Below, in pieces: positions 7,591-61,102 of a stretch of DNA of 64,000 bases. Below the pieces are notes generated by a model. It was not told where the DNA came from. It searched no databases and saw only the letters and a list, made by a program, of their open reading frames with translations. Each line of letters begins with the position of its first letter. Position 1 is the stretch's first letter. A program made the translations under genes and the position numbers. Origin of the DNA: Podarcis melisellensis (Eukaryota); NCBI GenBank assembly GCA_964234715.1, contig OZ174287.1, one strand, 5' to 3'.

Positions 7591-7811
7591 TAGTTTTTAA
7601 AATGATTATGGGGGAGGGAATGAAAAGAGGGTTTCAACGTGTGTCTCCACAAAGCCCTGTACGGTAGGCTATTGTTTCCTTTTTGTGGCTGGGGACCAAG
7701 ATGGGCGAGTGAGTTGCCTAAGGTCAAGTGAGGACTATGCTGGCTCCGTTGGGAAGCTTCCAGCCCTTTCTCCTTCTCACACATTTCTCTTTCTCTCCCC
7801 TCCCCCCCCAG

Positions 7812-8474
7812 ATGCCCATCCTCAAGCAGTCCCCTGTCTCCCACTCCAAGAAGCGGCCGCGTTTGGACCGGGCCATGATCAGCGCCCCCTTGGGTGATTT
7901 CCGGCACACGATGCACATCGGCCGTGGGGGAGATGCTTTTGGCGACACGTCTTTCCTCAGCAACCACGGGGGCTCCAAGGCCAACGGGCTGCCTCCCGAT
8001 GTGTCCCCTGGGGCCTTCTCCAGCCCTGGAGATGCCCGCTTTGAACTGTTGTCTCCCCCCGGGAGTGGGAACGGCATAGTTCAGAGCCCGGCGACGTCGA
8101 CCCCGGATGGCAGCTTCGTGGCCCTGCAGACCCCAGAGAAGGCAGAGCGGCAGAAGCCCTCTAACGGAAGGGACTGGGACCTGCCTCAGAAGTTCCCCTT
8201 GGAGAGCCCCACATTGGAACATGCCGAATCCCTCCTCTCTTTCCAGTTGGACTTGGGGCCTTCCATCTTGGACGATGTGCTGGGAGTGATGGACAAAGAC
8301 TGGGACAGCATCAGAGGGCAGGAACAGGAACCGCTGAGGGTCGAAAGCCCAAAGGGGCACCTCCATCGCGGTGGTGAAGAAGATGAGGAGGCGGCGGAGG
8401 AAGAAGAGGAGGAGGAGGACGAAGGGCAGGGCTACAGTTTTGAGGATGAACAGGATGAAGAGATTGGACTATAG
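7812..8474 (+). CDS. CDC42EP5: Cdc42 effector protein 5 (Borg3), 220 aa, single coding exon
   Basis: MPILKQ start directly after a polypyrimidine tract and cag|; CRIB ISAPLGDFRHTMHIGRGGDAFGDTSFL; BD3 septin-binding LLSFQLDLGPSILDDVLGVMD; ends in IGL as I recall for human CDC42EP5; adjacent to LENG9. Confidence 0.93.
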   Translation: MPILKQSPVSHSKKRPRLDRAMISAPLGDFRHTMHIGRGGDAFGDTSFLSNHGGSKANGLPPDVSPGAFSSPGDARFELLSPPGSGNGIVQSPATSTPDGSFVALQTPEKAERQKPSNGRDWDLPQKFPLESPTLEHAESLLSFQLDLGPSILDDVLGVMDKDWDSIRGQEQEPLRVESPKGHLHRGGEEDEEAAEEEEEEEDEGQGYSFEDEQDEEIGL

Positions 8475-21118: not shown

Positions 21119-22546
21119 ATGGCTGAACTGGTTCCCTCCCCTGAGGACTCTCCCACTGACCTCTGTTCTGATACCCCTGTGGAACCACTGGCAGCCCCCG
21201 ATTCTCTTCCAACTGAGCAATCCCTTGCTGAGATCGACCTCCCTTGCCGCTTTTTCCTAGAAGGTCGTTGCCGCTTTGGTTCCCGCTGCCGGAACAGTCA
21301 CCCTGGTGACATGGGAGCTGCTCCTCGTTCAGAAGATGGTGGATCCAACTGCAGTCGTTCTCCACAAGGCAAGAAGCCCCCCATGAAGACTGCGGAGGAT
21401 GTTATCTCTCGTCTCCTCTGGGACCCCCAGCTGCCTGCTGAACATTTTTCTATCGGTTACCTCGATCGGTTCCTGGGGGTATTGGAAGAGCCTTTTACTG
21501 CTTTCTCCTGGGAGGACCTGGCTTCAACTGGGCCTGGCGTGCTGGCTATCCCCAAACATAGGATCCACTATTTCAAATACAAGACTCGCATGGTGTGGGA
21601 CAAGGTGAGCCGCACAGACGACGTCTTTGGGTCTACAGGAAGTGGGAGAACCATCTTGGAGGTGATGAAGGAAGTCGACGAGGCAGCCAGAACCATTGAG
21701 GAAAAGGCTCAGGACCATCCTTCAAATGGAGACAGAGAAAGGGAGATGGGAGGTGTTGGACCAGGGGCAGCTAGAGGCAGCGGAGAAGAGGCAGTCAGTG
21801 GTTCAGCCAGAGAAAAACAGGTGGCCGAGACAGCTGACAGACAGGATGAGCTGGATAATTTGGATGCCTTCAGCATCACAAAGGAAAATGACCCAATAGT
21901 GGAAGAGGAGGAAAACACGGCTTTGCAGAGCAGGAAGGTGGGACACCTTCCGCATCGCAAACAGCGTCCCACCCATTTCATAGCTATCCAAGTCACCAGT
22001 CGAGAGACCTGGGAAGCTGTGAAACTCTTCCAAGGCGCCCTCTCCGAGGTTCAGCCAGGCCTAGAAGAGTTCTATACCCCTTTGCCTACTCTGCACATCA
22101 CACTGTGTCTGCTGCACTTAGATACCTCGGAACACATTTGCAAAGCTGTTACGGCACTCCAGGAACTGCAAGCCAACAGCCAGCGCCTGCTGCCCCCTGC
22201 CTTGCTTCTCTCCTTCCACAAGGTTGAAGCTTTCCATTCTCGTGTGCTTTACTTGTCACCAGCACCTACACCTGGGCTGGGATCACTGGCCCGGACTTTG
22301 GAGGATGCCTTTAACAAGAAGGGCTTGGCAGTGATTCCTCCTCCGGACAAAGACAATTTCCACTTGACCATGGTGAAGATCCCACGGGCAAAGGCAGATC
22401 TACGGCTGCCAGTAGATTCCTCATGGATTCCAACTGTTAATGATTTAGGAACACAGGCTGCAGAGGCATTATGTCTGTGTGAGGTTGGAAAAGGTAGGAG
22501 GACTGACGGGTTTTACACCACGGTTCTGAAAATAGATCTATACTGA
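21119..22546 (+). CDS. LENG9: Leukocyte receptor cluster member 9, 475 aa: CCCH zinc finger, MJ1316 domain and AKAP7-like 2H phosphoesterase
   Basis: CRFFLEGRCRFGSRCRNSH; TAEDVISRLLWDP...GYLDRFLG...IPKHRIHYFKY; RPTHFIAI...LHITLCLL...FHLTMVK; convergent with LENG8. Confidence 0.95.
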   Translation: MAELVPSPEDSPTDLCSDTPVEPLAAPDSLPTEQSLAEIDLPCRFFLEGRCRFGSRCRNSHPGDMGAAPRSEDGGSNCSRSPQGKKPPMKTAEDVISRLLWDPQLPAEHFSIGYLDRFLGVLEEPFTAFSWEDLASTGPGVLAIPKHRIHYFKYKTRMVWDKVSRTDDVFGSTGSGRTILEVMKEVDEAARTIEEKAQDHPSNGDREREMGGVGPGAARGSGEEAVSGSAREKQVAETADRQDELDNLDAFSITKENDPIVEEEENTALQSRKVGHLPHRKQRPTHFIAIQVTSRETWEAVKLFQGALSEVQPGLEEFYTPLPTLHITLCLLHLDTSEHICKAVTALQELQANSQRLLPPALLLSFHKVEAFHSRVLYLSPAPTPGLGSLARTLEDAFNKKGLAVIPPPDKDNFHLTMVKIPRAKADLRLPVDSSWIPTVNDLGTQAAEALCLCEVGKGRRTDGFYTTVLKIDLY

Positions 22547-25428: not shown

Positions 25429-26431
25429 CTGAGGGAGATAAAAAGAGACACTGGTGAATGGGAAAAGGCAGCAGATGAAATCCAGGCTAAGACGACAAGC
25501 AGAATCCTGCCCCTAAGTATGCAATTAGTTACCGTTAGCTACCCTGGCAACGTGAAGAAACTGCACTTGAGAGCGTTTCGTATTTAAGCTCCTAGCCCTC
25601 ATGGTTGTTTTTAAGGAGACTTTGAAAAGGGGTCCATGTGGGATGGGCTTTCAATGTGCTGCTTAATTTGTGAAGAGGATCCAAAGTTCAGCTGGCATGA
25701 AGCTGAGTGTGTGTACAGAATTATGCAGATATGGGGCTGGTTGCAATAACAGGCATTCTATCCTTGCTCAGAAGCACATTCAGGAGGCCTGCAGGTTATA
25801 CTAAGTCCTAAGCTATGAACGACAAACAAAAACTAAACCTACCCCTACATCCCAATGCAATGGTAATAAACATACAAAGAGGCAACTAGCTACACACAAG
25901 GCAGGGAGGAAAGAGTCGTCCAGACTGTACTGGCAAATAAATAGCAAGTTAGTGATGAAGCGCCCACAAATCCTGAAAATGTAAAATAGTCAGGACTGGC
26001 ATTGGGCAGGTACTGGCTCCCCTCCAAGTGGAAGGAAAAGCTTAGAAAAATGTACACAGCTGTGCCTGTGGAGCAAGTGGGAGAAGAAACCCACTTCAGG
26101 GAACTCTCCTACGTCCAAGTAGAATTGACTTTACATTGTACCAATTGTTAAAAGGGTGACACCGCAGAAAGAGATCTTGGGAAACGGGGCAGGAAAGAGT
26201 ATGCTATGACAAAACATGCTAACTTGCTGTTCTAAGGAATCCTATTAGTCGTTCACAACCTTGCACATAATTAAAATTTGCTCCTTCAACTCCCTAAATA
26301 TAGATATATATATTAGGACAAAGCAACTGCTCTACCCTCAAGTGCTGCACTGCATTTTTGCCCTCTTAGCATCTTTTACTAGGCACGGCCACCTTGTAAG
26401 TCCTCAATCTATTTTTGCTTCCTATCTTTTG

Positions 26432-26779
26432 GGTAAAGGTAAAGGTACCCCTGACAGTTAGATCCAGTTGTGGACGATTCTGGGGTTGTGGCACTCATCT
26501 CGCTCTATAGGAGCAGGCGTTTGTCCGCAGACAACTTCCGGGTCATGTGGCCAGCATGACTAAGCCGCTTCTGGCAAACCAGAGCAGCGCACGGAAACAC
26601 TGTTTAACTTCTTGCTGCAGCGGTACCCATTTATCTACTTGCACTTTGACGTGCTTTTGAACTGCTAGGTTGGCAGGAGCAGGGACTGAACAACGGGAGC
26701 TCACCCCGTCACGGGGATTCGAACCGCCGACCTTCTGATTGGCAAACCCTAGGCTCAGTGGTTTAAACCACAGCACCAC
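26432..26779 (-). mobile_element. Sauria SINE in LENG8 last intron
   Basis: GGTAAAGGTAAAGG tail and family similarity. Confidence 0.88.
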
Positions 26780-27745
26780 TTCTGGACTAATGGGCCGTTA
26801 CCACTGTCACTAATTACCACAGTGCTTTGTAAGCTTTTGGACCTGACAACCATTTTATTAAATCCCTGTAGACAGAGACCCCCCCCCCCGGCACTTTAAA
26901 GGCTTCTGGCATAAACTGAAGGAGCATGCAAAGCATATGTGAGCACAGATACCACCCATCTATGCAAGCCCCTTTTTCAGTGCAATGCACACTCGGATTT
27001 CCTTTCTTACTAGGATGTAACAAGGCTGCACCCCACTCAAAGCAGCAGAGTGTAGATAGATGGCATCCATGCTCAGATGCACATCCAAGGGAGGCCCAGA
27101 GTTTCCAGTTCCAACAATTGATAGCTATGCAAGCGGCTGCCTTCTTGTGCAGCTCTCTTTATCTGAACCAGGGCAGGCACTGTGCCATGGGACAGTCCTA
27201 TTCCTTACCCTGCCTCCATCCCTCTTCAGGTATGGGATGCAGCAGCAGCAACAAAATAAAATCTCACAGGTTTGCTCCTGTAATTAGTATTTCTTTCCCA
27301 TACACCAATTTTGTTTTTTGTCTGGGGCAATGGCTCTTTATTGCTTCTTGCGCCCAAATAAAATCTCAATGCTGTATTTCCGGAATCAAGTAAAAATAAG
27401 ATGAGCACTTCAGCTGTTAAGTTTACTTAGATTTCTTAAGTGAATCCAAACAGCCCTAGTGGGTCCTCAACCTGGTCTGTGTTTCACAGCCAAACTGCTA
27501 TTTAAAACCCAAGGGATCAATGGTGGCTTAAGCCATCTTCCTACTTACCTGTGAAAGACATGGCCCTCTAAGCTACAGTCGCAGAAACACAACCCTCTTT
27601 TACCCACCTCTAGCTACAAGGGACTTAAATCTCCCTCTTTGCTCCTCAAAGGAGTTGGGGCAGAGGGGAGAGGCAGGAGAAGGGTGCAAGTGTGAGTCAT
27701 CTCCCCAGCCCTGACCCCAGGAGTGTCTGGTCTGACTTCACATAC

Positions 27746-27953
27746 GTTTTGATCATGGCTTTGAGGGCCGTTTTCCTCTCTCGCTCAGCAAACTTGTCAA
27801 TGAGGTAGCCGGACATGCAGGGTGCCTGGCGGTACAGGCAGAAGAAGCGGTGGTAATTGGACAGGGCCCAGGCAGCCCGCAAGGCGAGCGCATGTGCCAC
27901 ACAGGGGTCTGCTTTCATCTCTTTCGTCAAATACGCCAGCTCTGTAGTGATGT
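27746..27953 (-). CDS. LENG8: LENG8 exon ([23 protein letters not shown]...[14 protein letters not shown])
   Basis: 208 nt, cag| acceptor, AC|GTATGT donor; PCI domain. Confidence 0.95.
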
Positions 27954-28640
27954 CTGGAGGGGAGAAAACGGAGTCATCAAGACTCATTCTCATGCTATAA
28001 CCTTCCTCATTTTCTTGCTCTCAAATGCCCATTATCTTTGGCTTAAATATACAGGCCTATTCTTTATGCCTACATTTAAGCTTGCTTGGCTTGGCACAGT
28101 CTATTAACACAGTTGGTCAAGAATTTAAGCTCTTCTTTCCCTATAGTCTGGAGCCTTTATCTGCTTTACAGTCTTTTGAAAGCAGGTTTAGCAATATGCT
28201 TGACATCCTTCTAGGACTGGCATTGATTGAAAGAACACTAGCCTTTGCAGGGGCAGGCTGTGGGAAAGAGAGGCGCAGGGGCTGGGAATTCTTTATGGGT
28301 CTCACACTACAGTCCAATGTGTAGTGACTGCATCTTCCGCCTACAGGCACGGTGGCTACAAGGACACATTCACGGGCAAAATGCCACAAAAAAGGGATCC
28401 CCGAGTGCCAGAGGAACTCGGCAGACTAGCCTTGAACTACCAGAGACTCCTGCACCCCTTCCCTTCAAGAAAAATTTGCTATACAGCAAATCACAGGAAT
28501 TGGTTTTCTAATTGCAATTTACATATAATATGGGCAGCCTTACCACAAAACTGCTGCAGGGTCAATTCAGATTAAGCTATGATCATACAGGTCTTCCTCT
28601 CCACCCATGCACCCCTCCCCTCCCCAGCCCCAGCACTCAC

Positions 28641-28770
28641 CCCCTGAGTTTTTTGTGAAAATGTAATAGAGGATGCGGTAAGCAGTGAATTCTCCAACAT
28701 TCCCAGGGAGGTTCTCCGCATAGAGTGACTTCAGCTGTGTCTGGCACTGGTTGAACTCCTCATGGTCACC
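28641..28770 (-). CDS. LENG8: LENG8 exon ([43 protein letters not shown])
   Basis: 130 nt, tag| acceptor, G|GTGAGT donor. Confidence 0.95.
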
Positions 28771-29936
28771 CTAGAGAAGATACTCCCATTATTATGGAAC
28801 TGTTTCAAGTTGCCACACACCCCTCCCGCTCCTAGAGCCAGATACAAACTTGGCAGTCGTGTGCTCCCTTCACCAAGCCAGAAAGGCTCTGTGCCTTCCC
28901 TGAATTAGCACCGCCCTCCTCCAGTGTAATGTGTGAATGGACCCTTAATCCTCACAGGTTCTCATCTGGCTAGTGTAAGAGAAACTCTTTGTGCCACAAG
29001 GACTACCTGCGTTGGGAACTCTGACACACCTGTGCCTCCCTCCCTCAAGTTCTGCATGCAGCAAGTTCTAGATGTAATTCAGTTTACTAATATTTTATGA
29101 AACAAACTGGAAAACAATCAGTATGTGATAGGTGAAGGAGATAGGAAAAAGGCAGAGGATAGACCAGGGGTTATAATGTTTTGGGGATCTTGGGCACACC
29201 TTCAAACTGGAGACTGCCATGGGCACCCCACCTGCGCCACATTTCTCCTCTCCCCAGCTGTAAACCCCCAACTGCCCCCTGACCCACAATTCTATGTGAA
29301 AAAGGCTTCTATTGGCTCACTAAGGCTTCTTTCAAACCTGATTTTGGGGCGAGGGAGCAGAGGATAGGACCCTGTGGGGACCAGAGAAGGTATCTGAGGA
29401 TACATGTGTAATCATGAGCACTAAGCTGGCAACACATTAACTAGGAGAACAAGGCACCTATGTCCTTCCCCAAGGCATCTTCTTGTTTTTAAATAGGTGC
29501 AAGAAACTACAGGCAGATTTATAAAGTTCTCCAAGGTTACAAAGTGACGTACACGTTTTTTTTTTCCTTACTAAAATGCAAAAGGAAAAGCAGGGATTCT
29601 CCAGTTTGAGAATACCTTGGTGCATCTGACAAAGGGCGGCAGCCACTATAGCTCTTCTCTACTGAGAAGGGCAAGCAACACATTTCCTGGGACATGGTCT
29701 GAAGAAATGCCATGAAGCAATCTTGTTGAAGCTAATTAGTTCTGGGTCGGGTGATTGCTTCAACCTAAAGGTTATGTACATGGTTCTCCCCCCTTTTCTC
29801 CTCATAGCAACCCTGTGAGGTAGGCTAAGCTACAAGATGGTGGTTGGCCCAAGATGATCCAGTGAGCTTCATGACCGAGGAAGGATCTGAACCTGGATCT
29901 CCCCCGCTCTAGCTGTGACATCCCATTGGCTCTTAC

Positions 29937-30005
29937 CTTCTCCAGTGCTATCCTGGCATGGGTTTCATAGACCTCCACAGTGAATTCTGTACGAATTCCC
30001 TGAAC
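29937..30005 (-). CDS. LENG8: LENG8 exon ([23 protein letters not shown])
   Basis: 69 nt, tag| acceptor, AAG|GTAAGA donor. Confidence 0.95.
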
Positions 30006-30744
30006 CTAAGCAGGGCAAGAGAGAGGGTTAGCAAGCAGTTATAGGTCAGTAAATATTTACATATTCATCAATGGCTGAATTCCTTTCTGTTTTCCCCAGT
30101 GAAAGGAAGGTTTGGAATATACGTGGATAAATGAAGTGCAGGCTGCTTCTGAAGCTATCAAATTTAGGAGACACGTTGCAGCCTCCTGCAATGGGTGGAG
30201 AGACTTTGTTGGCCATACATAAAATGCTCTCTTAACACCGCCCCTTGGCAAATAGAAGTTTATACAAGGCATTGATGCCAACCTGAACATCCCTTCCATG
30301 TTCTTGCTTGATTTATGGATACGGGCAGTAACCAAATCAGAAGCATAAAAGTGTTCCGATACCTCAAATGAAGCAAGCTAGCTCGAAAGCCCAGTTATTT
30401 TAAAACAACTCGAAAGATAATATAGATCATCTGTGCCACAAGCAGCAGAAGACCAAGGTGTACCAAACCCTACATTAAAAATAGCCTTTAAATCTGCTGC
30501 ATCGTATGAAACTTGCATTTTAAAAAACTTTTCTAAAAGCTTTTATCTTGTGTTACAGTACCTCCTGCTGACAACTCTAATACGGCTCCCCCAAATAATT
30601 TATCTCCTTCGCTCCCTGCCCCCAAAAGTAACCAACAACCCAAGTTAGAACTTGGAAAGCTACAAAAACTACATTTATTTTTTAAAAAAGCTGGACCTTT
30701 TTGGACTAGCTTTACTGTACTGTTGATGCCACCTGCTCAGAGCT

Positions 30745-30944
30745 NNNNNNNNNNNNNNNNNNNNNNNNNNNNNNNNNNNNNNNNNNNNNNNNNNNNNNNN
30801 NNNNNNNNNNNNNNNNNNNNNNNNNNNNNNNNNNNNNNNNNNNNNNNNNNNNNNNNNNNNNNNNNNNNNNNNNNNNNNNNNNNNNNNNNNNNNNNNNNNN
30901 NNNNNNNNNNNNNNNNNNNNNNNNNNNNNNNNNNNNNNNNNNNN
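30745..30944. other. Assembly gap (200 N)
   Basis: Run of N; a round length suggests a placeholder. Confidence 0.99.
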
Positions 30945-37700: not shown

Positions 37701-40389
37701 ACAGCTGACTTAAGCCCCTTCAAATCAACGGCAGCTAAAGGGCCCTGGCAACAGAAGGCACCACATGCAGCCAGGTAGCTGACTCACAAGGCCAATAGAG
37801 GCCCTTTGTGACATCAAACCAGTTCAAGGACTGATAACTGAAGCAGCAAATGCAGATAAAACGGACACCGGAGGACAGCTGTTTCCCCCCTTCTGAAAGC
37901 CTTGTGCTCCCACTCCCCCCCCCCCCGGAATTGAGACAATTTATATCCTAATCTGAACCAGGATTACTTGTAAATAATCACTATGGAAGATCAGGCAAAG
38001 TCTTTGTTTTGTTTATTTTCATGACAACTCTCAACCTTGAAATGAGCTCCATAAAAGCTACTAGCCTGCAATCTCATACTTCTATGTTGACCATTTGTAG
38101 CCTACGCATAAGCACACCAGGTTTTGTGTCCTTCTACTTGGTTCCCTTGAGACCACTCTTGCTCCCCAAAGTAAGGCTGGGCATTTGATCAGTCCAAAAA
38201 GATCCGGGTGAACTGATTGGTGAAGTATTTGCAAAAAATGGGCATATATTTTTTAAACATTAACTGCATTAGAACAAAAAAAAAAAAACCTCAAGTTGTC
38301 CATAAAGTTGGCATATATACTAATTACAGAAACAAATTAGTTAATAGGTTATTGTTCCACAATAAGTGTGAACAAGTTTCTAGACTCTAGACCTCTCTCA
38401 CACAGGAGCTTGACAGAGCAGACAGCCAATCACACAAAGTAGGCAGACTGGTCTCTGCTACAAACAAGTTGAAATTACTGGTGATCTGCCAGTGATGACT
38501 ACATTCCTGTTTGAAGATGGCTACACTTATGGCAGATTAAAGATGGGTAAGCTCCCTCACTCCCAGGCTTTGCTAATAGGTGACACAATAATAAAAGGTG
38601 ATTCCTACATAGTGCCAACTTAGGCTTTATCTGACTGTGATCAAATAATTAGTTGTCAACAGACAACAACCAACTATTCGACTGGTAATCCTAGTAACTG
38701 GGCAAGTTGCTGTGAAGCTTGCCTTAACCATGTTATTTTTTTCTGCTCGAAACCACCACTAGATCTTTATTCATTTAGAAAGCGGGTGGCTAACCTATGG
38801 TCTTCCAGATGTTACTGAACTTCAACTCCTATCAGTCTAAACCAGCATGATCAATAGTAAGAGACAATGGAAGCTGTAGTCCAGCAACAGTTTGGGAGAC
38901 AAGCTTTGTCTCCAAAGTAGAATAAAATAAGCCAGCTTTTCTGCTGTTGGTTTGTTTGATTTGTGTTTGTTTGCATTTGACTCTCAATCAGTTCTAAATT
39001 TGTTAGATGCTCTGAAGGCCCACAGGCACAAAAAGTAGTCTAGAAATACTTAAAGAAAACATTCATTTAGTACAGGAATTTATATGCTGCTCTATAACCA
39101 AGTTCTCAAGAATAGTTACAATGCCGATTAAAAGGAAAGAAAACACAAACAACTCAAGAACAGAACTTGTCCCAAAAACGTAAAGAACCTTACTTAATGA
39201 AAATGATAACAAAGCTTTTTTTTTTTAATTGCCCCAGGGACAATTTTCTGCAGAGAAAATGCAACACTCACCCACATTTGATGACTAATGGAAAAGCAGA
39301 GGCCTGAAAAAGATAAGTACTATACATTTGACACTCTGGTCTCACTTTCCTTCCTCCTGAATGTCCTGTTATAGTCAACTCTGCAAGACCAGCAGACTTG
39401 TGAAATCATTGCCATTATGATGTCACAAGGTGAAATTATGATCTCAGTGACCAAAGTCTCAAAAACATGTTGGCATGTGTCCTCAATACAACTCTACTGC
39501 TGTTATAGCTGGCCACTGGTCCTATCTCTTAAGACATCCACATTTCTCCTATGAGATGATAGCATGCAGTTACCATAAAATCTGTCAAAACATCTATGCT
39601 AGATGCATCTCTTCTGCACTGGCTAGCCAACAAATTTGGTACACAGTATTTGGGTTTCACTTCCTGTTATGTGACACATAATTTTGTGGGATTAAACTTG
39701 ATTTCTCATTCTACAGAACCAGGGCCATCAATCTTGAGCCAAGACATCAGACTTTACCTTCATCCAGAAAGCTGTTATAGCTGCAAGCTTTCATCTATGA
39801 GAGACCTAGCCCCTTCTTGAGCTCTGATCAGTACCTCTTCTTTCCTCCACAAGCCTATCCAGCCACGTAAAAACTGATCTCAATTTGCTCCTCCACCTGA
39901 TGCTTGAACCTATAATACAGGCTTACACTGAACCAGGCCACTGGCCTATCAAGCTCAGTGCTAACTAGCAGTGGCACTCAGAGGTATCCAGCAGGGGTCT
40001 TCCCTAATGCTCCTGAGATTGGGGCAGGGAGAGAGAGAAGGTAAATTCTTCTCTGGGTTTGAATTTTAGCCACATGGAATTTCAACGTTGGAAACGAACC
40101 AATTTCCTTAGTCACACTCATCTGGTGAGTTAATATCTTTTAACAGCAACAATTTCCTAGCCCTTTTATGTTATGAGAGATAACAGCTTGTGTTACAGCC
40201 TGAAAAAGCTGGCTTATTATTCCAGCCACACAGCAACATTGTTATGAGCATAGAATGAGGAAGCAAATGCAGATCAGGTTACCAGAAGTACAGTGGACAG
40301 CCTTCTGCATTTTAAAACCACTCGGCTATCCCAAATTCCTCCTTTAAAGACACCCCACCGACCAAGTTAAAATAAACCGCTGCAATCAC

Positions 40390-40427
40390 CATTCCGAGGC
40401 ACGCTGGTCGCCTAGATTGGCAGCCAT
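40390..40427 (-). CDS. LENG8: LENG8 first coding segment (MAANLGDQRASEW); exon may begin at acceptor 40628
   Basis: Resembles the recalled human MAANVGDQRSTDW; donor TG|GTGATT; phase 2 fits the next exon. Confidence 0.88.
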
Positions 40428-40599
40428 CCTTAGGTCCGTGGAACCGACAGCCGAAACCAATCCTTCCCCCGGCGACCTTCTCTTGGAGCGACTGCCCGCC
40501 CCCTTTTCTTCTTCTTCTTTTCCACAAGTAGAGGCCAAACAAAGGAAGTTAACTGGGCGAGATGAACATCCCGCTCGAGGCACCGCCGACACCTGGGGA

Positions 40600-41620
40600 C
40601 GCCCCTTGGGCACCCTCGACGCCCACTTCTAGGGCGCCCAGCACAGGGCGAGAGGAGGGGGCAGGGAATGAGGCTCCCGAAAAGCCAAAATCCTAAAGAG
40701 TGAAAGGTCAGGGATCTCCCTCTGAAGCCCCCTCCCAGTAAGAGGAGCTGTGGTCTGCAGAGGCCGATGCGCCCTCCTTGTCGCCCCAACCCCGGGGTCT
40801 AATATCCTGTGTACCCCCGGCTGTTTATAAAAAAACTGTACCCCAAGTTAAGTGTCTTTTCTCTCCTACCCCGCCCCACCCAAGTCTCCACCAACGCCCC
40901 CCTCCTTTCCCTGGCGAAGGAGACCCCCTGCCCTTGTGCCCCCTCCCAACTGGCAGCCCCCCACAAAACTCAGGGGTCCCCCTCCCGGCCTGCCCAGCGC
41001 AGGCCAACCTCGCTCTCCCCGACTCCGCTCGGCCTCGTCCTGCCTCCCTCAGTCGCCCGCTTCTTCCCTCATCCGGGTCTCGCCCCCTCCCCCCCTTCCT
41101 CTCTCCCCTCAGCCTAACAGGGCGGAGGGAAATATAAAGGGTGGAAGCGGCTCTCTCGGCCTCGCCGCTGCTGTGGTGGCGACGGGAGGCGAAGCGGGGC
41201 GGCTTTTCGGGGTTTTTTGTTGTCGTCGTTGTTCTCCTTCCGGCGCCGCAGCGAGAAGCGGGAAGCGCTGCAAGGCCGTTGGGTCTCCGCGCTGGCAAAA
41301 TAGCCGGAGAAGGAGCCTCTCGCTTTTCCAAAATGGCGCCCGCCGCCTTCTCCGTCTCCGTCTCCTCCTCCGTCTGCCTTTTCTTCCTTCCGGCGGCCAA
41401 GCAGGAAGAGGCGGGGAGGGAGCAAGAGGCGTTCGAGGCTTCGTCCTGTCAGTCAAAAGTCTTCTTGCGGCGCTGAGGGGAGGAGGTCTGCGCAAGTCCG
41501 GTAGGAGGGAGGCACGGGCACCGGTTCTTGGCTCTGCGCCCCGGGTTCGAATCCCCGCCTCTCCCCCGCAACTGTTGGTAGGTCAAAGTGTGCCAAGTAG
41601 GTACTGCCCCTGAGACGACG
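40600..41620 (-). promoter_or_regulatory. LENG8: LENG8 CpG-island promoter and non-coding exon 1; TSS probably near 41390-41400
   Basis: Very high GC and CpG; YY1 motif GGCGCCATTTT (~41330-41340), ETS CCGGAAG (41387-41393), GC box (~41408-41416). Confidence 0.75.
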
Positions 41621-41807
41621 AATGGGATCAAAATGGAAACATGCAGGATCGCTAATAGACATTAAAATGGTTTTAGACTCTAGAGGCTATTGGACTTCAA
41701 CTCCCATCAACCCCATCCAGCATAGCCAATAGTAGGGGATGATGGGAGTTTGAGTCCACATCTGGAGGGCAACAGCTTCCCCCTTCCTGTTTTAGTGCTC
41801 GCTCTTT

Positions 41808-42009
41808 GAAGAAAATTCTGATGTTGGGTACGATTGAGGGCACAAGGAGAAGGGGATGACAGAGGACGATATGGTTGGACAGTGTTATAGAAGCAACCAA
41901 CATGAATTTGACGAAACTGTGGGAGGCAGTAGAAGACAGGAGTGCCTGGCCTGCTCTGGTCCATGGGGTCACAAAGAGTCGGACACGACTAATCAACTAA
42001 ACAACAACA
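41808..42009 (+). mobile_element. RTE-BovB LINE 3' fragment
   Basis: ...GAGGGCACAAGGAGAAGGGGATGACAGAGGACG...GGGTCACAAAGAGTCGGACACGACT...(AAC)n tail. Confidence 0.85.
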
Positions 42010-47786: not shown

Positions 47787-47792
47787 TTTATT
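47787..47792 (-). terminator. TTYH1 polyadenylation signal AATAAA
   Basis: First AATAAA on the minus strand ~1.07 kb after the last stop codon, followed by a U/GU-rich element (ttttgtgtgtgtgtgg). Confidence 0.6.
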
Positions 47793-48857: not shown

Positions 48858-48938
48858 CTAGGGCAGGAATCCGGTCCGGTAGGGAAGGTCCACTTCTTCG
48901 CTAGCACCGACGTAAGACGCTCTCATGCTGGGAGAATA
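48858..48938 (-). CDS. TTYH1: TTYH1 exon 14, coding in the long isoform (YSPSMRASYVGASEEVDLPYRTGFLP*)
   Basis: ccccatag| acceptor; similar to the recalled TTYH2 end YSPSMRATYLSVADE; TAG at 48860-48858. Confidence 0.82.
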   Translation of the reverse strand, partial: YSPSMRASYVGASEEVDLPYRTGFLP

Positions 48939-49101
48939 CTATGGGGCAATACATAGACAGGAGTAGCGGGGTTATTATTACCCAAGAGATATATCACAAC
49001 AGCAATAGGAACAGCTGCAGGCGGGGAACTTGTGGCCCTGCAGATGTCACTGGACTCCCAGCTCCGGTCAGTTCTCGGGACACAGACACACCTTTAAAGT
49101 A

Positions 49102-49331
49102 CAGTGGTGCCTCGGGTTACATACACTTCAGGTTACAGATGCTTCAGGTTACAGACTCCGCTAACCCAGGAATAGTACCTCGGGTTAAGAACTTTGCTTC
49201 AGGATGAGAACAGAAATTGTGCTCCGGTGGCACGGCGGCAGCGGGAAGCCCCATTAGCTAAAGTGGTGCTTCAGGTTAAGAACAGTTTCAGGTTAAGAAC
49301 GGACCTCCGGAACGAATTAAGTACTTAACTG
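49102..49331 (+). mobile_element. Tc1/mariner MITE with damaged right TIR
   Basis: Same family as 7346; abuts the next MITE via a shared TA. Confidence 0.8.
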
Positions 49332-49333
49332 TA

Positions 49334-49877
49334 CAGTGGTACCTCGGTTTACGAACTTAATCTGTTCTGGTAGTCCATTCTTAAACCAAAACCGTTCTTA
49401 AATCTGAAATATACTCAGAGTCGAGAGTGGATTTCATGCTCTTTATTCAGCTCATAGTGGTGAAGACGAATGGGAGTTCCCCCAGAATGTCTGCTTTATA
49501 TACATTATTTACATAATGGGCCCCACGTGATTGGCTAATTCTGGGATTCACCTGTAGGCCAATCAGGTTGCGGATTCACTTCTACCTGGAGCTGGATTGG
49601 GTGGCTCCTGTGGACCAATCAGACTGCTGCATTCTGGATCCTATTGTTCTAGGACCAATCAGACTGCTGCATTTTGGATCCTATTCAACTTAGTACATAA
49701 CAAAATCGAGGCGTGCTTTCCCTAATGAGGTCTCCCGCCACCGGTGCCCTTCCACCGTTCGGATTCCGTTCTTAGACCAAGGTAAAGTTCTCAAACCAGG
49801 ACACTATTCCCGGTTTCGTGGAGTTTGTAAACCAAATGGTTCTTAAACCAGACTGTTCTTAAACCAAGGTACCACTG
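49334..49877. mobile_element. Second Tigger-like MITE, interrupted by a solo LTR
   Basis: TIRs CAGTGGTACCTCGGTTT...AAACCAAGGTACCACTG with TA TSD. Confidence 0.75.
49405..49702 (-). mobile_element. Solo LTR nested in a MITE
   Basis: TG...CA ends, 5-bp TSD AAATC (49400-49404 / 49703-49707), minus-strand TATAAA and AATAAA, repeated CCAAT boxes. Confidence 0.8.
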
Positions 49878-50865
49878 TACATGACTCTCCCCCAAAGAAT
49901 CTGGGGGAGTGTAGCTAGTTGCAGTTGCTGGGAATCGTAGCTGTGCAGACAACAGTTCTCATGATTCTTTGGCAGGCGGGGGGGGGGGGAGATGTGTTTT
50001 AAAGGTAGTGCATGAATGTGGCCAATGGGAGTCTGCAGTCCAGCAAATTCTGGGGTGCCACAGGCTTCCCATCTCTTCACTGCTTCATCGTTCTCTATCC
50101 ACCGGCAAATGCATATGGCAGACAAGCAAGACACAGGTTGGGGAAAATGAGTTGGCAGAATATGTGAACATTGCCCAAGCATTTCTGCGTCACGTGGCCC
50201 TTTCTTCAGATATTACTAACCAGTGCTGCCAGACAACTGTGGTCGCACAGGATATTAGCAGCATCCAAATTTGCCCTCCCGTCCCCTTTTTATACGTGAT
50301 GTGCTCATTGACCACAGAGTATACCTATTCCTCAACGCAGCATTCTATATTTGGAGACTTTGTTTAACCCTTCAGGTCCATTTTTTTTTTTTAAATGCAG
50401 CGTTCTTGGCAGTTGACAAGTAGTCATTCTGTGCAGCTTTAAGGGAGCAGAATTCCTGTACAATTGCATCAAACTGCTTATACAATACCAGCAAACACAA
50501 TCCCCTTTTGCTTTCCACTGTGTGTATATGGTCCTGTTATAGCAAGAGGAGTTTTTAATGTTTGATGTTTTATCATGTTTTTAATATTCAGTTGGGAGCT
50601 GCCCAGATTGGCTGGGGAAACCCAGCCAGATGGGCGGGGTATGTATGTATGCATGCATGCATGCATGTATGTATAAATAAATAAATAAATATCATCATCA
50701 ACATCATTACATTCTGGCTCACCAGATTTTCAATAGGCCCCCCTCTACTGTTTTCACAGCACAACCATGGCCACAAAACTACAGTGGTTTGTTCTGCAGC
50801 TGTGTGGCCACTGTGTATGACCCTAGTGTGCCACATCTGGGCCCCGTGCAATGTTGCAAACTTAC

Positions 50866-50944
50866 CGAAGGGGGTGGGGAATGGCGGTCGATGAGGGGGA
50901 CGCTCTCAAATCGAGGACTGCCACTGTACGAAGCGCTTTGACTC
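50866..50944 (-). CDS. TTYH1: TTYH1 exon 13, dual-frame: ESKRFVQWQSSI* (phase 0) or SQSASYSGSPRFESVPLIDRHSPPPS (phase 2)
   Basis: 79 nt, gcttgcag| acceptor, TCG|GTAAGT donor; both frames match known TTYH C-termini. Confidence 0.9.
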
Positions 50945-51672
50945 CTGCAAGCAACACCGACAAAGAAGCTGAAAACAGGTCCCCCCTCCCTCCCTTCGCA
51001 GACCACTACCCCAGAACTGGAAGGTCAAATCCACTCTCAGAGATACTCAAAAGCCTCTACTCTGACTGTCTTTCACAAGTTCCCAGAGAGCAGGCAATTT
51101 ATATGGTTCTCGGTTTATTTTGGTCACAATTCAGGAAGCCGTAAACCAGAAGGCGGATCCTCGTTTCACCAAGGCGTGATTGATACGCCTGCCTGGGCTG
51201 TGGATGCTCTTTGTGTTTTGGAGTCGATGAATTCCCTCCTTCCGTCATATAGAACCATGGAATCGTAGAGTTGTATGTGTTTGAAAGTTTAATAGGAGAA
51301 CTCCACTCGCAGGGTTTCATATGCACAGGCACAACTTGTGCAATTCTTCCTTCTCAGAAAAAGGAAGGGACAGAGCCGGCCCACCCAAGAGGCAGGGTGA
51401 AGTGCCTGCCTCGGGCGGCAGAAGGGCAAGGGGCGATGCTCTGCCTGTCCCACCACTTCTGCTGCTGCCACTGAGAGAGAGGTGCTCCTGCGTGTGCCAT
51501 AGCCACTTGCCATCCTTGTCCCTTGGCAGAGAAGCCAAACAGCAATGCTGATTCCTGCTAAGTCTGGCCTTGGCTCCTGCTGAGTTTGGCAAAAGCCAGG
51601 GTATTTTTCCATGCCACGTCGCTGCTCGGATTCCCTGCCCTCCAGGGCGGAGAAGCCAAGTGGCGATGCTTT

Positions 51673-51807
51673 AAGGCTTCCCAAACTTGGGTCTCCAGCT
51701 GTTTTTGGACCACAATTCCCACCATCCCTGATCTCTGGTCTTGCTAGCTAGGGATGATGGGAGTTGTAGTCCAAAAACAGCTGGAGGCCCAAGTTTGGGA
51801 AACCCTG
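51673..51807. mobile_element. Palindromic MITE
   Basis: Same family as 9627-9770. Confidence 0.8.
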
Positions 51808-52721
51808 ATTTAAGGAGTGCCTCAGCTCCCTTAGGTGGCAAACCGGGATGGGCCACGGCCCAGGAAGGTGACAAGATGGAGGAAACGATACTGTACTCAT
51901 ACACAGTAGGAGGAGGGCAATGGCTAACCCTCCACTATACAAAGAGGATTCACAACCCAGGTTAAGTGAATCAGCCAGATCTAAGAAAAATCTGGCCCCG
52001 GTCGCTTCAAAAAATTTTAGTGGCATTTGTAGCACATTCCGATCTGAATCTTGCCCCAGATGTTGGGCCAGGGCAGTAACAAAACAGAACAGTAAAAGGG
52101 TCATGAGAAGGAGGAAAGGAGAAGAATAAAACAGAATGTTTGTTGGAGAAGTTGACCCTACATTGGGAAGCTTTTGGGTGAGAAAAGGAGCAGCAAAAGG
52201 GAGTGCTGTCCACGCCAGAAGAGCCTCTCTGGATTTGGGATTTGGATTTGGGAAAGCAGGATTTTGGAAAAGCTTCTGTCTTGGGATGGGAATAAGGGGT
52301 GAGAATGAGTGCTGGGACAAAGCAGTTGTTGGCTAATTCCTGTGCAAACAGGGTGGGAATGGGAATGGGAGAGCAGGACACGTAAGTGACAGAGAAGTGA
52401 AGGAAACTAAAGGATTCATTATCCATAACTCCCATGGAAAACTGCTTGATATGGGCTGGATTGTGGTGGTGATGGCAAAGGACGTCCATGGCTGGCACTT
52501 AATGGATACAGGTTTGGGTTGAGGAGGAGCAGCTTTTGAAATATAAAGGATTGTGGGGGTTGGTTTGGGTCTCAACCACGCATGCGATTTTGTATTTGTA
52601 AGGCTGCGGTTTGTCCGCAGAAGGAACTGCTGAACGGGTCAAACCAGCCTGTTCATTAAGCCAGGCATCCTGTTATCATCCATCCTCTCACTTCACCCTG
52701 TTCACATGTCCAAAGGAGCTG

Positions 52722-52958
52722 GTGAAGAAGAGTTTGGATTTGATATCCCGCCTTTCACTCCCTTTAAGGAGTCTCAAAGCGGCTAACATCCTTCTTTCCC
52801 TTCCTCCCCCACAACAAACACTCTGTGAGGTGAGTGGGGCTGAGAGACTTCAGAGAAGTGCGACTGGCCCAAGGTCACCCAGCAGTTGCATGTGGAGGAG
52901 CAGGGAAGCGAACCCGGTTCACCAGATTACGAGTCCACCGCTCTTAACCACTACACCA
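52722..52958 (-). mobile_element. tRNA-derived SINE
   Basis: Minus strand begins TGGTGTAGTGGTTAAGAGCGGTGGACTCGTAATCTGGTGAACCGGGTTCG (A/B boxes) and ends in a GGCGGGATATCAAATCC...CTTCTTC tail. Confidence 0.8.
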
Positions 52959-53183
52959 AGCTGGCTCACATAGAGACTGTTTGGTGATGATGTTCTTTCA
53001 GGAGAGGGGAAGCCTCCTACCCATTCACTTGGGTGGATGGCCTGCCATCCTACAGGGCAGGAGAACAATAAGCCAGGGAGCTAGTCTTTTGTTTCAGGCT
53101 GATCTGAAGCTGAAAAGAGACACCAAGGCGTGGCTCGCTCTGTGTGCTGGGAAACCTAATGGGGAAGAAAGGTCTGTTGAAGT

Positions 53184-53644
53184 TGTTATAGCCAGAGGGT
53201 ATCCGAACCAAGTACTCTCAAAGCCCTAACTCAGGAAGAGAGAAGTGTAAATAGTTTTATTGTTCTCTGGAAATCGGGTAATTAAAAAGGGTCGGGGAAA
53301 TAGCAGTGATGAATGGGGTGAGCTACGTACACATGTCATCACATGACAGCCACTCCCTCTTTATGACCTGTTTGTGATGTACTGATGATGCTGTTGGAAG
53401 TGTATTATGGGAAAGGGGTGGATAAGTCTTAAAAGTTCATGCAAGCCCATGCTCAGGGTTCCTACTCTTTGTGTGTTTGAACCTTGTTGCAACAAATAAA
53501 GATCAGGTCTACTGACCGCTGTTTTGCTTCTTTAACTTGGCTGGGGACTCCTTCCTTTGACTGACCAGAGGGACCCTTGGGGAGTGGCACCCCAATGAGC
53601 TGGGCAGTGGAGTAAATCTGCACCCCAGGATTTTTTCCTTATCA
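53184..53644 (+). mobile_element. ERV-like solo LTR
   Basis: TGTTATA...TATCA ends, near-TSD AAGT/GAGT, AATAAA; similar to the LTR at 61103. Confidence 0.55.
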
Positions 53645-53688
53645 GAGTGCTAATGCTTTGGGCTCACCCATCTTATGCTCAGGTGGTA

Positions 53689-54031
53689 AAGGTAAAGGGA
53701 CCCCTGACCATTAGGTCCAGTCGTAGCCAACTCTGGGATTGCGGTGCTCATCTCGCTTTATTGGCCAAGGGAGCCGGTGTAAAGCTCATGTGGCCAGCAT
53801 GACTAAGCCACTTCTGGCGAACCAGAGCAGCACATGGAAATGCCATTTACCTTCCCACCGGAGCGGTACCTATTTATCTACTTGCACTTTGATGTGCTTT
53901 TGAACTGCTAGGTTGGCAGGGGCAGGGACCCAGCAACGGGAGCTCACCCCGTCATGGGGATTTGAACTGCTGACCTTCTGATCGGCAAGTCCTAGGCTCT
54001 GTGGTTTAACCCACAGCGCCACCCGCGTCCC
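53689..54031 (-). mobile_element. Sauria SINE
   Basis: 16-17-bp TSD (C)TTATGCTCAGGTGGTA on both flanks. Confidence 0.92.
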
Positions 54032-54526
54032 TTATGCTCAGGTGGTATATATGTGTAAATAAAACCATATATCCTAAAGTCATGCCAAATCCAGGGCAAG
54101 CACTTGAACTCCTGGGTGCTCTTGCTGCTTGGAGACTGACGTGTGTGCAAGTGTGCGTGTACACACATATATACACAAACATCTCTCCGTGTGTTTGGCT
54201 TTAGAACACAGGAATGACATGCAGGAGTCAGGAAACGAATGAGCAATGGCAGGTAGAGAAATGAAGAAAGCACGACTGGGAATGAGGGTGATGCTGTAGC
54301 AGTAGGCGAGGAGGAGGAGGAGGAGAGGAGGAAGGAAAGGGAGAGGAAGCACTCAGATGCAGGTTGGGAGGGAGGGGTGGGGACTGCCCTCCCTTCCCCC
54401 CGCCACTCGCGCACTCGGATCTGTGCCGGTTGCTGGCCGCTCCGAGCCCCTCCCGCCTCGCAGGGGGCACCGTGACCGAGCGAGCGGGGAGGGGGGGTTG
54501 GGAGGTGGGCGCTTGGGGCTACTCAC

Positions 54527-54718
54527 ATGTACTGTGAGACGGGGGCGTTGGAAATGGGGGGGGCTGAGAGGCGCAGGCTGCCACGGCTGCCCCAGCTTGA
54601 ACAGTGGCTATAGGAGCCGGGCAGGGTGGGCCCGGCCCCCCCCGCGCGCACCGTCGGCTGCCTACGTGCCTGGGGCGTGAAAGGGTCGTCGTCCTCCATG
54701 TCGTCGTAGTCCGAGTCC
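54527..54718 (-). CDS. TTYH1: TTYH1 exon 12, long form (DSDYDDMEDDDPFTPQ-ARRQP...ISNAPVSQYM); short form would end at 54670
   Basis: gtctag| acceptor; acidic DYDD..DDDPF motif; AT|GTGAGT donor; internal CAG|GCACGT candidate donor. Confidence 0.9.
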
Positions 54719-55389: not shown

Positions 55390-57021
55390 GTTCTTGAGCA
55401 CCGGGTGAGATCACGTCCCCCAAAAGCACTTTTTCCAGGGAGAGGGCGAGGTGCAGGTCACATGACACACTCGGGAGCATGTCCTGGAAGACACACGTTT
55501 TGCATCGGAAAATGTTGGACCCTAGCAAAGGGCAAAGCCCTGATCCACTGCGGTCCTGCTCCAAATGGGGACCCTGACACCTGGAAACAACTGTTCTGAA
55601 CTGGTATCGAAGCATGGGATGAGGAGTTAATGTTCTCCTAATCCTGCACTAGGTTCCAATTGTACCTGCAGTTTCCTTTAAAAAAAACCATTTGCACAAT
55701 TGTGTGAATAGCGTGATCTCTAGTTTGGCCCTGATGCTAGACCAGAGCATAGGCTGGTCAGTTGGCTGGGGCTGGCGGTGGGGCTTCTTTATCAACAGGA
55801 GAAGCTTTTCACAGAATGGAGGTAAGTATCATCACCGGCTAAATGCCTGCACATCAAGACAGACTGTTAAAGGCACAGGACAGAAAAGCTAGATAGAAAG
55901 CTGCCTGTTCAAACCAGGCTGCAGCCCACATGTCAGATGCTGCAGCTAGAATGCCTCTGGCCACAAGTTGACCGCCAAGTACCCTTTTGCAATTTTGCAC
56001 GGGAACACGACCACACACCTAGCTGATGCTACAGCCCGAATGGCTGATAGTTATCCATCTCCCAAGATGTATTTGCTCATGGCTTAATTGCACATAATTG
56101 CACATAAAATCTGACCAGAGGAATAAATTCTAGATCGGGAAGGCAAATAGCCACTTGTCCGGTTTTCTGTGGCATAGAAGAATCGCCTCCAGGCAAATCT
56201 TAACGATAAAACAATTAACAGGGAGGTGATACAAAGACTACTGCAATCGACACAAGATAATATCACCAAGTGCTGAACCACTGGTATATTATGAGTGAAC
56301 TCTCTATTTACTGAGTTTGCTGTTGTTTAAGATAAAGCCCATTTGGGAAAGAAACTACTTTTGCCATTTTATGGACGTTCATTGCTTGTTTACAGGTAGT
56401 TGCCTTGGTGATATTGTCTTCTGTCGATTCCAGGCAGATCTGGCAGGAAAGCAAGAGGAGGGGCCAGAGCTGAGCCTTGGAGGACACCGTACATGTGCAA
56501 AAGGTCAGAGTTCACTCTCCTATTGAATCAGACCAAGGGGTCCATCCATTCCAGCATCCTGCCTCTCACAACAGCCAATCAGATGTCTTCTCTGGGAAGT
56601 CCAAAGGCAGAGCATGAAAGCCATCACCCTGTTTAATTGTTGCCCCCCCCCCCCGGCAACTGGACTCCAGCTCCCATCAGGCACAGCTAGCATGGCCAGT
56701 AGTCAGGGGTGAAGGGAATTGTAGTCCAACAGCATCTGCATTATGGATCTGGCCAACGGCCCATCCAGTCCAAGCATCCTGGTCAACCAGGTGACATAAG
56801 TTCAAGACAGCTTCATATGTTCAAGTTTTGCAAAAGTGGGCTGTTGTTGTTTGGGGGGGGAGCTTTTTAAAGTCAACAAATGACCAACATAAGATGATGT
56901 CTGGGGAAATAGGGCAGCAGCTGCCCCGCCCCTGTGGGCTAATAAACTTTAAAGGGTCCATTTGCAAAGTTGCATTAAATCTGATGCCCAACTCGATGAC
57001 GCCAAGGCTGTGGGTGCTCAC

Positions 57022-57164
57022 CTGTTCTGGAACCTCTTCCACGCCCGGGGCAGACTGCAGACGGCAGTGGTGAAGGAAAGGGCAGAGAGGAAGGAGAAGA
57101 GGAGGAGGAAGAGCAACCCTTCCATGCCATCGTAGCACAGCCCTTTCAGGGCATCCACATAGTC
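57022..57164 (-). CDS. TTYH1: TTYH1 exon 11, TM5 (DYVDALKGLCYDGMEGLLFLLLFSFLSALSFTTAVCSLPRAWKRFQNR)
   Basis: 143 nt, ttattag| acceptor, AG|GTGAGC donor. Confidence 0.93.
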
Positions 57165-58496: not shown

Positions 58497-58589
58497 CTTA
58501 TGAAGTCCCCGGCAGTTGAGCAGAGCAATAAGGTTATGGAATTTGCTTTCTGTGTTGTTCAAAGTGCTCTGGATAGATAAGATGTTTTT
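58497..58589 (-). CDS. TTYH1: TTYH1 exon 10 (KNILSIQSTLNNTESKFHNLIALLNCRGLHK)
   Basis: 93 nt, gcag| acceptor, AAG|GTAACC donor; N-glycosylation sequon NNT. Confidence 0.92.
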
Positions 58590-58763: not shown

Positions 58764-58856
58764 CTCCGCTGCTGGGAAATGTGGGATGGCTTCTCTTTCC
58801 AATCCGTACAGCTGAGAATGTATGTTGGACAATGCCCTCTGACACATGGTGAGCCT
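58764..58856 (-). CDS. TTYH1: TTYH1 exon 9 (RLTMCQRALSNIHSQLYGLEREAIPHFPAAE)
   Basis: 93 nt, ctgcag| acceptor, GAG|GTCAGT donor; close to the recalled human RLTLSQRALANIHSQLLGLEREAVPQFPSAQ. Confidence 0.93.
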
Positions 58857-60531: not shown

Positions 60532-60587
60532 CTGCTGGAAAGGGTTAAAGACGTCTTGGCTGCAGGTTAAGTAGTATTGCAGGATTT
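60532..60587 (-). CDS. TTYH1: TTYH1 exon 8 (ILQYYLTCSQDVFNPFQQ)
   Basis: 56 nt, cccacag| acceptor, CAG|GTAGGC donor; conserved YYLxC...NPFQQ. Confidence 0.92.
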
Positions 60588-61102
60588 CTGTGGGATTGGG
60601 AAGAAAAGGAAAAGGAAATCAGACCGTGGCTCCCTATCAAGGCACCAGGCTTTTCCCATGCTCCTCCTGGATCCTGTGTTTGTTTGCTCTAACTTGGGTT
60701 TTACATGTTCAAAAAGAGGGTCTCTGCCCTTGATAGCAATAGGACAGGCCATGTGACACATTATGCAGGGATGGGGAATCTTTGTGTGCCCCCCCCCGCC
60801 CAGATGTTGCTGGACTACAGTATCCATCATCCCTGGCCATTGGCCATACTTGCTGGAGCTAATGGGAATTGCAGTTCAGCAATATATGGGGGTCTAGCAA
60901 GATGACATGCAGTGGTGCCTTGGTTTTTATTTCACTGTTGAGTAGCTGCTGTGGGGAGAGCTATGGGGAGCAGTTGGAAAGGGCCACCCTTTCTTCTCTC
61001 ACTCTGGACAAATATTGCCTCCCCTCCCCTTGCAGCAATTATTAACTCCAGAAGCACAGGCTCCCCTATATGCCTAAGGTGGTGTTACAAGAATTGTGGT
61101 GG

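Follow-up and report, generated by a model that had tools for sequence, protein, structure and literature searches.

The 3′ end of a lizard TTYH1 gene: two alternative splice donors and an ancestral C-terminal tail with a PPSY motif

In the open-access literature on TTYH proteins, regulation by Nedd4-2 is described for TTYH2 and TTYH3 only. A 64,000-nucleotide stretch of DNA from the lizard Podarcis melisellensis (NCBI GenBank assembly GCA_964234715.1, contig OZ174287.1; hereafter the window) raises the question of whether a TTYH1 gene can bear a C-terminal tail with a PY motif like that of these two paralogues. A preliminary description, made from the letters alone, had proposed that it does, and that one isoform of the protein might therefore be regulated by Nedd4. 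We found that positions 48858-54718 of the window, on the minus strand, make up the 3′ part of the TTYH1 orthologue of this lizard. Taken as a whole, our reading is that this orthologue selects its C-terminus through a choice between two splice donors, that the longer product carries an ancestral PY tail, and that this product would be under the control of Nedd4-family ligases. We regard it as highly probable, the last part being the one that we infer.

The window holds only exons 8-14 of TTYH1, all on the minus strand; all searches were run exon by exon. The core of exon 12 (54670..54718) begins after the acceptor ...gtctag/G at 54718 (a slash marks the exon boundary), reads xDSDYDDMEDDDPFTPQ, and ends at a GC donor, CAG/GCACGT, that directly follows the glutamine codon. 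A second donor in tandem, AT/GTGAGT, lies 142 nt downstream, so that the exon can be extended over 54528..54669; this extension encodes ARRQPTVRAGGAGPTLPGSYSHCSSWGSRGSLRLSAPPISNAPVSQY(M), that is, ARRQPTV...SAPPISNAPVSQY plus the first two bases of the methionine codon. Exon 13 (50866..50944) is 79 nt long, is bounded by the acceptor ttgcag/G and the donor TCG/GTAAGT, and can be read in two frames. In frame A, entered from the GC donor, positions 50944-50909 encode ESKRFVQWQSSI and a stop codon follows at 50908-50906, 40 nt before the end of the exon. In frame B, entered from the long donor, the whole exon is open and encodes (M)SQSASYSGSPRFESVPLIDRHSPPPS. The coding part of exon 14 (48858..48938) follows the acceptor ccatag/TAT at 48938, encodes YSPSMRASYVGASEEVDLPYRTGFLP, and closes with a TAG at 48860-48858. 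The 3′ untranslated region continues downstream, with the first AATAAA, a putative polyadenylation signal, at 47792, 1,065 nt beyond the stop.

The preliminary description had joined the exon 12 extension, exon 13 frame B and exon 14 without a stop, and placed a PPSY motif across the last junction. Both points hold on the minus strand at the coordinates just given. The proline, proline and serine are the last three codons of exon 13 (50874-50866) and the tyrosine is the first codon of exon 14 (48938-48936); the junction is in phase 0, which splits the motif as PPS/Y in the context SPPPS/YSPSMRASY. The tail after DPFTPQ thus amounts to 48 + 26 + 26 = 100 residues, of which SAPPISNAPVSQYMSQSASYSGSPR is an example of a peptide within the long form. 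Some 100 open codons spread over three in-phase, canonically spliced pieces are more than chance can account for.

Two products can be predicted from this arrangement. Splicing from the upstream GC donor into frame A of exon 13 would give a mammal-like protein of about 449 amino acids (aa) with the 12-residue end ESKRFVQWQSSI. Splicing from the downstream GT donor would add 47 codons, enter frame B, continue into exon 14, and give a 537-aa protein with the 100-residue tail. PPSY would be confined to transcripts in which frame B of exon 13 is spliced on to exon 14, because its tyrosine is encoded in exon 14. A stop 40 nt short of the last exon junction, as in frame A, is near enough to it to evade nonsense-mediated decay. 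The short-form donor (54660-54676, minus strand) is of the GC type in five squamates and a turtle (gcacgt, with gcatgt in Pseudonaja), and is CAG/GTACCG in sheep, while both frames of exon 13 are retained in squamates, turtle and sheep alike. The short 449-aa form, annotated as isoform X2 and ending in ESKRFVQWQSSI, occurs in the same squamates as the long form. We regard the GC donor as a candidate for the evolutionary lever between long and short forms.

The tail is collinear with those of TTYH2 and TTYH3. The exon 12 extension matches residues 420-482 of mouse and human TTYH2 (E=4e-9) and residues 443-476 of TTYH3, and exon 13 frame B matches residues 483-507 of TTYH2 (E=8.5e-4) and 477-501 of TTYH3. 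The 26-aa peptide of exon 14 had no match in a PDB search, and its homology is based on a local tblastn alignment with TTYH2 (YSPSMRATY) together with its identity to squamate sequences. Compared with the mouse and human paralogues (PDB 7rtt, 7p54, 7rtw and 7p5c), the whole lizard tail follows the same order of blocks (ISNAPVS.YM, ...PR.E..PL, SPPP[ST]YSPSMR), and the paralogues also have an exon junction after PPP[ST]; their tail region is intracellular and unmodelled. The differences are that the middle of the extension has diverged, that an NPRY of TTYH2 is SPRF in squamates, and that no short end of the ESKRFVQWQSSI type was present among the TTYH2 and TTYH3 sequences retrieved. These alignments support homology between the lizard tail and the tails of the two paralogues.

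For comparison of the gene itself we used the TTYH1 loci of Anolis carolinensis, Varanus komodoensis, Pseudonaja textilis, Heteronotia binoei and the turtle Mauremys mutica. All five have 14 coding exons, the last three of which match those of the window. All six splice sites (the exon 12 acceptor, the GC donor, the long donor TACAT/gtgagt, the exon 13 acceptor and donor, and the exon 14 acceptor) and the TAG stop are kept in five squamates and the turtle. Ratios of nonsynonymous to synonymous substitution rates (dN/dS), obtained as summed pairwise Nei-Gojobori estimates over five squamates, were 0.46 for the exon 12 extension, 0.15 for exon 13 frame B and 0.36 for exon 14, compared with 0.036 for exon 11 in the membrane core and 0.035 for the exon 12 core. 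Mean pairwise nucleotide identity was 91-94% in the tail exons (94% in the extension, 91% in exon 14) and 57-68% in the flanking introns, with 57% in the intron preceding exon 14; in the 3′ untranslated region it was 74% over the first 150 nt after the stop and 62% over the next 150 nt. The dN/dS values and these conserved nucleotide islands show that the tail is under purifying selection as a protein, weaker than that acting on the membrane core.

Two features of the extension stand apart from this pattern. The first 150 nt of the intron directly after the long donor (about 54378-54527, minus strand) are 82% identical among squamates, against the 57-68% of the other flanks, and the extension has a markedly reduced synonymous rate (dS 0.096; the value for exon 11 is 0.33). 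Together they hint at a constraint at the nucleotide level, possibly on splicing. Both would also suit an account in which the long form is a minor or non-productive transcript in lizards, the short ESKRFVQWQSSI protein dominates, and conservation reflects splicing or regulation through the 3′ untranslated region rather than protein function; the annotation of 449-aa short isoforms in squamates points the same way. However, the open frame, the phases, the position of the stop and the motif are retained from teleost to squamate as well as in the paralogues, dN/dS stays under 1 while exons 13 and 14 have accumulated numerous synonymous changes, and identity drops past the stop codon, 91% before it giving way to 74% and further on to 62%. 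The short form, moreover, needs the weak GC donor, whereas the long donor has the consensus GTGAGT. We consider this account quite improbable.

Is the gene TTYH1, as the preliminary description had named it? Frame A of exon 13 is identical to residues 440-451 of human TTYH1 in 7p5j, its C-terminus (QESKRFVQWQSSI), and an ending of the ESKRFVQWQSSI type is common to the named TTYH1 proteins of lungfish, frogs, turtles, alligator and mammals. The upstream exons, all on the minus strand, were located by Pfam and tblastn searches, the latter with squamate TTYH1. Exon 8 (60532..60588; EILQYYLTCSQDVFNPFQQ) corresponds to residues 293-311 of the 537-aa squamate protein and to positions 283-301 of the Pfam Tweety profile. 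Exon 9 (58764..58856; RLTMCQRALSNIHSQLYGLEREAIPHFPAAE), the boundaries of which are inferred from the 93-nt exon of Anolis and Varanus, covers profile positions 298-332, and exon 10 (58497..58589; KNILSIQSTLNNTESKFHNLIALLNCRGLHK) covers positions 332-363. Exon 11, with transmembrane segment 5 (57021..57164; DYVDALKGLCYDGMEGLL...PRAWKRFQNR), covers positions 364-411 (E=7e-21) and shares 48/48 residues with Varanus and Podarcis TTYH1. The Tweety profile (PF04906) thus matches exons 8-11 collinearly over positions 283-411, and window exons 8-14 correspond to residues 293-537 of the squamate "protein tweety homolog 1" with 95-100% identity per exon.

In PDB searches, exon 9 scored 47.3 bits to TTYH1 and 21.5 to TTYH2, and exon 10 scored 32.3 and 25.9 bits, respectively; TTYH3 was last or absent for both. 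The one result of these searches that might favour a mislabelled TTYH2 or TTYH3 paralogue, in which a PY tail would be merely expected, is that exon 11 and the tail score higher to TTYH2 than to TTYH1 (for exon 11, TTYH2 64.9, TTYH3 55.5 and TTYH1 54.4 bits). The TTYH1 of the PDB, however, offers no tail to match, and the exon 11 scores are explained by the long stem branch of mammalian TTYH1, which measures 0.34 substitutions per site where squamates have about 0.08. This branch was seen in a maximum-likelihood tree of 22 database TTYH1 and TTYH2 proteins, in which near-identical squamate proteins served as proxies for the window exons and everything after DPF was removed. The split between TTYH1 and TTYH2 received 100/100 support, and the 537-aa squamate proteins fell within amniote TTYH1; the grouping with TTYH2, which the preliminary description had named as an outcome that would tell against its reading, was not seen. 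With the TTYH1-specific end in frame A, the scores of exons 9 and 10, the neighbouring genes described below and the tree all on the side of TTYH1, an identity as TTYH2 or TTYH3 is rejected, and its probability is in our view close to nil.

The neighbourhood of the window matches the mammalian TTYH1 region in its LENG8-, LENG9- and CDC42EP5-like domains. Downstream of TTYH1 and on the same strand, an exon with a SAC3/GANP domain (27700..28020, minus strand; Pfam PF03399, E=1e-9) belongs to a LENG8-like gene, and in sheep a SAC3_GANP gene likewise lies downstream of TTYH1 on the same strand. A single-exon open reading frame of 475 aa (21119..22546, plus strand) is intact and has Pfam CCCH zinc finger, MJ1316 and AKAP7 2′5′ RNA-ligase-like domains, and a further open reading frame (7728..8474, plus strand) has PBD and BORG_CEP domains. 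We class these as LENG9-like and CDC42EP5-like, respectively; LENG8, LENG9 and CDC42EP5 are neighbours of TTYH1 in human. Two side observations concern the LENG8-like gene. The GC-richest stretch of the window (40000-42000; 0.557) has long open reading frames on both strands and no Pfam match, and probably represents the promoter of that gene, in a CpG island, or its first exon. A run of 200 N at 30745-30944, an assembly gap or mask, lies inside its region.

How widely the tail is distributed was assessed among database proteins. A word-index search that started from fragments of shark and snake proteins together with the window exons gave 132 TTYH1 proteins; a search of representative proteins with exon 12 returned mostly fragments, snake and shark entries among them, and the long forms were recovered by tail-restricted searches with cobra and turtle proteins. 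The "protein tweety homolog 1" of Varanus, 537 aa, heads a 90% identity cluster of 79 sequences that takes in isoform X1 of Anolis carolinensis, A. sagrei, Pseudonaja, Candoia and Heteronotia, as well as the 442-aa isoform X3 of Podarcis, which has the same tail. The clusters of turtle isoform X1 (516 aa) and frog isoform X1 (536-538 aa) number 23 and 56 sequences, respectively, and caecilian TTYH1 isoforms also bear the tail. The 14-exon structure is annotated together with the tail in the turtles, frogs and caecilians as well as in squamates, Candoia and Podarcis among them. Among teleosts, a fragment from Characodon bears it (...DRQSPPPSYSPSM), and both a ...HQDSKRFLQWQPWL ending and the long form occur; these two endings would fit one exon read in two frames. 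The exon 12 extension is also present in a shark TTYH1-like protein. The long tail is thus the ancestral vertebrate TTYH tail, common to TTYH2 and TTYH3 and kept in the TTYH1 of teleosts, amphibians, turtles and squamates, which bears out its description as ancestral. The accompanying framing as a feature of lizards or sauropsids stands only in part: squamates and turtles do have the tail, but so do frogs, caecilians and a teleost, and no long form of bird or crocodilian TTYH1 was found among the proteins retrieved, the alligator being represented only by the 449-aa form.

The long isoform is already in the NCBI and UniRef annotation for dozens of species and is neither new nor specific to lizards. 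Squamate "protein tweety homolog 1 isoform X1" (537 aa; Anolis carolinensis XP_062813426.1, Varanus komodoensis XP_044304010.1, Pseudonaja textilis XP_026567820.1) has the same 14-exon structure, three tail exons and PPSY junction as the window. In Varanus and Anolis the peptides of exons 13 and 14 are identical to those of the window, and exon 12 of the squamate isoform is identical at 64/68 to 66/68 residues; there is no substantive difference, and the window represents another species' copy. In the open-access literature we found no paper that treats a PY-bearing TTYH1 isoform. Among snakes, exon 14 is present in Pseudonaja (after a 1.3 kb intron) and Naja, whereas the 6.3 kb that follow exon 13 at the Crotalus adamanteus locus (24267-30893) did not reveal it. 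Crotalus gene models (KAK9395508.1 and others) end at a TGA after the long donor, and look like read-through annotation errors.

What the tail might do is suggested by its motif. PPSY fits the [LP]PxY consensus and is invariant in 12 TTYH1-long tails; in an alignment of these with five TTYH2 tails (17 tails), the SPPP[ST]YS columns are invariant throughout and PPSY aligns column for column with the PPTY of TTYH2. For Tweety proteins the NEDD4-2 motif is given as PPTY in a review table, and the surface and total levels of TTYH2 are under NEDD4-2 control (PMC8950476). Nedd4-2 ubiquitinates and regulates both TTYH2 and TTYH3 (PMC8273234; PMC2824488), and the C-terminal region 415-532 of TTYH2 is intracellular and was unstructured and unmodelled in cryo-electron microscopy (bioRxiv 10.1101/2021.08.15.456437). 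By analogy, the lizard tail would be cytosolic and disordered, and SPPPSYSPSM would present a PPxY ligand to the WW domains of Nedd4-family E3 ligases. The long isoform would then be open to ubiquitin-dependent control of its surface and total levels, and the short isoform would not.

The tail has a second tyrosine motif, which has fared differently. In exon 13 frame B (50902-50913, minus strand), squamates have SPRF and turtles SPRY where TTYH2 and some frog TTYH1 proteins have NPRY (NPxY-like); unlike the PY motif, this one has not been conserved. That tail motifs are not all kept together can be held in favour of an alternative in which the tail is translated but its PPSY block serves a partner other than Nedd4-2, be it a different WW-domain protein or one that reads SPPPSYSPSMRxSY as a trafficking signal regulated by phosphorylation, and TTYH1-long escapes Nedd4-2 control. 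The conserved block also exceeds PPxY itself (YSPSM and a second Y/F), the title of He et al. 2008, as cited in PMC8273234, has Nedd4-2 interacting differentially with the family, and a review table (PMC8950476) names TTYH2 alone where it mentions control of surface and total levels. However, the context of the motif is nearly that of TTYH2 (SPPPSYSPSM against SPPPTYSPSM), a reported Nedd4-2 target. We judge such another partner unlikely, if far from negligible.

Several points weigh against the reading given at the outset. The tree took in TTYH1 and TTYH2 without TTYH3. The isoform models of other species, which bear on how the two donors are used, are predictions. The dN/dS of the tail is far above that of the core, which is expected of a disordered region and yet is compatible with weak constraint outside the motifs. 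That the PY motif is what mediates binding of Nedd4-2 in TTYH2 and TTYH3 is taken here from secondary citations. Finally, control of lizard TTYH1-long by Nedd4-family ligases is putative, though plausible by analogy with TTYH2.

How, then, does mammalian TTYH1 differ? Human TTYH1 is said to have no PY motif. The human 7p5j end and the sheep locus agree with the view that canonical mammalian TTYH1 is without the tail, and no mammalian TTYH1 with it was found among the proteins retrieved. Like the lizard gene, mammalian TTYH1 (human 7p5j, sheep) has the frame A end ESKRFVQWQSSI, an exon 13 of similar size (81 nt in sheep, against 79), a stop about 40 nt before the last junction, and a terminal exon thereafter. 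Unlike the lizard gene, its short donor is of the GT type (exon 12 of sheep ends at a canonical CAG/GTACCG) and the extension is gone; in its place, sheep has an intron 12 of 120 nt (Ovis canadensis locus 18646-18765), and a monotreme-like sequence has a similarly short intron 12. Sheep exon 13 is still dual-frame, reading ESKRFVQWQSSI with a stop or NPSASCSGSHQSEPF..., and is followed by a 100-nt intron and the terminal exon. Mammalian gene models use frame B only when exon 12 is skipped (RNPSA.CSGS...RRRPH); these models end in ...SFPGCRRRPH and have no PPxY. The absence of extension and PPxY in sheep points to loss of the ancestral tail in mammals. As seen in the tree, the TTYH1 core evolved faster on the same lineage that lost the tail.

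It had further been suggested that the non-coding last exon of mammalian TTYH1 might be a relic of the lizard coding exon 14. Its position is in keeping with this, given the 81-nt exon 13, the equivalent donor and the terminal exon of sheep, but its sequence is not: mammalian exon 14 has no recognisable YSPSMRASY. In tblastn searches of the sheep locus with lizard, turtle and frog tails, the only matches to YSPSMRASY/ISNAPVSQYM were weak proline-rich ones (E ~1) in the polypyrimidine tract of intron 13, and we rejected these as remnants of the tail. As a separate observation, one frame of sheep intron 12 (RTPWSEGGGAG) shows a weak resemblance to the beginning of the lizard extension (RPPTARAGGAG), which is not significant alone. 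Sheep intron 12 may be a shrunken remnant of the extension.

These comparisons lead us to a proposal that we put forward tentatively, thinking it somewhat less apt to be right than wrong. In non-mammalian TTYH1, a switch between a weak GC donor and a consensus GT donor, acting on one dual-frame exon of 79 nt, would exchange a 12-residue end for a 100-residue PY tail that could be regulated by Nedd4, and both frames would have persisted between teleosts and turtles. In the stem lineage of mammals the short form would have become fixed, the GC donor having been converted to GT and the extension with intron 12 having shrunk to about 120 nt. If so, the reported absence of TTYH1 from the targets of Nedd4-2 would be an innovation of mammals rather than a trait of the paralogue as such.

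No new kind of biology is involved here, the isoform is already publicly annotated, and the interest of the locus is low to moderate. Exon 13 nevertheless illustrates neatly how an exon with two reading frames can be conserved over deep evolutionary time, and the long and short isoforms amount to a clean natural experiment on the function of the tail. The contrast between TTYH1 and TTYH2/3 is easily taken as a fixed difference between paralogues, whereas the comparative data point to a loss in mammals. In frogs, turtles, lizards and fish the same PY tail survives on an alternative TTYH1 isoform, which is relevant to the use of Xenopus or zebrafish ttyh1 as a model of mammalian TTYH1.

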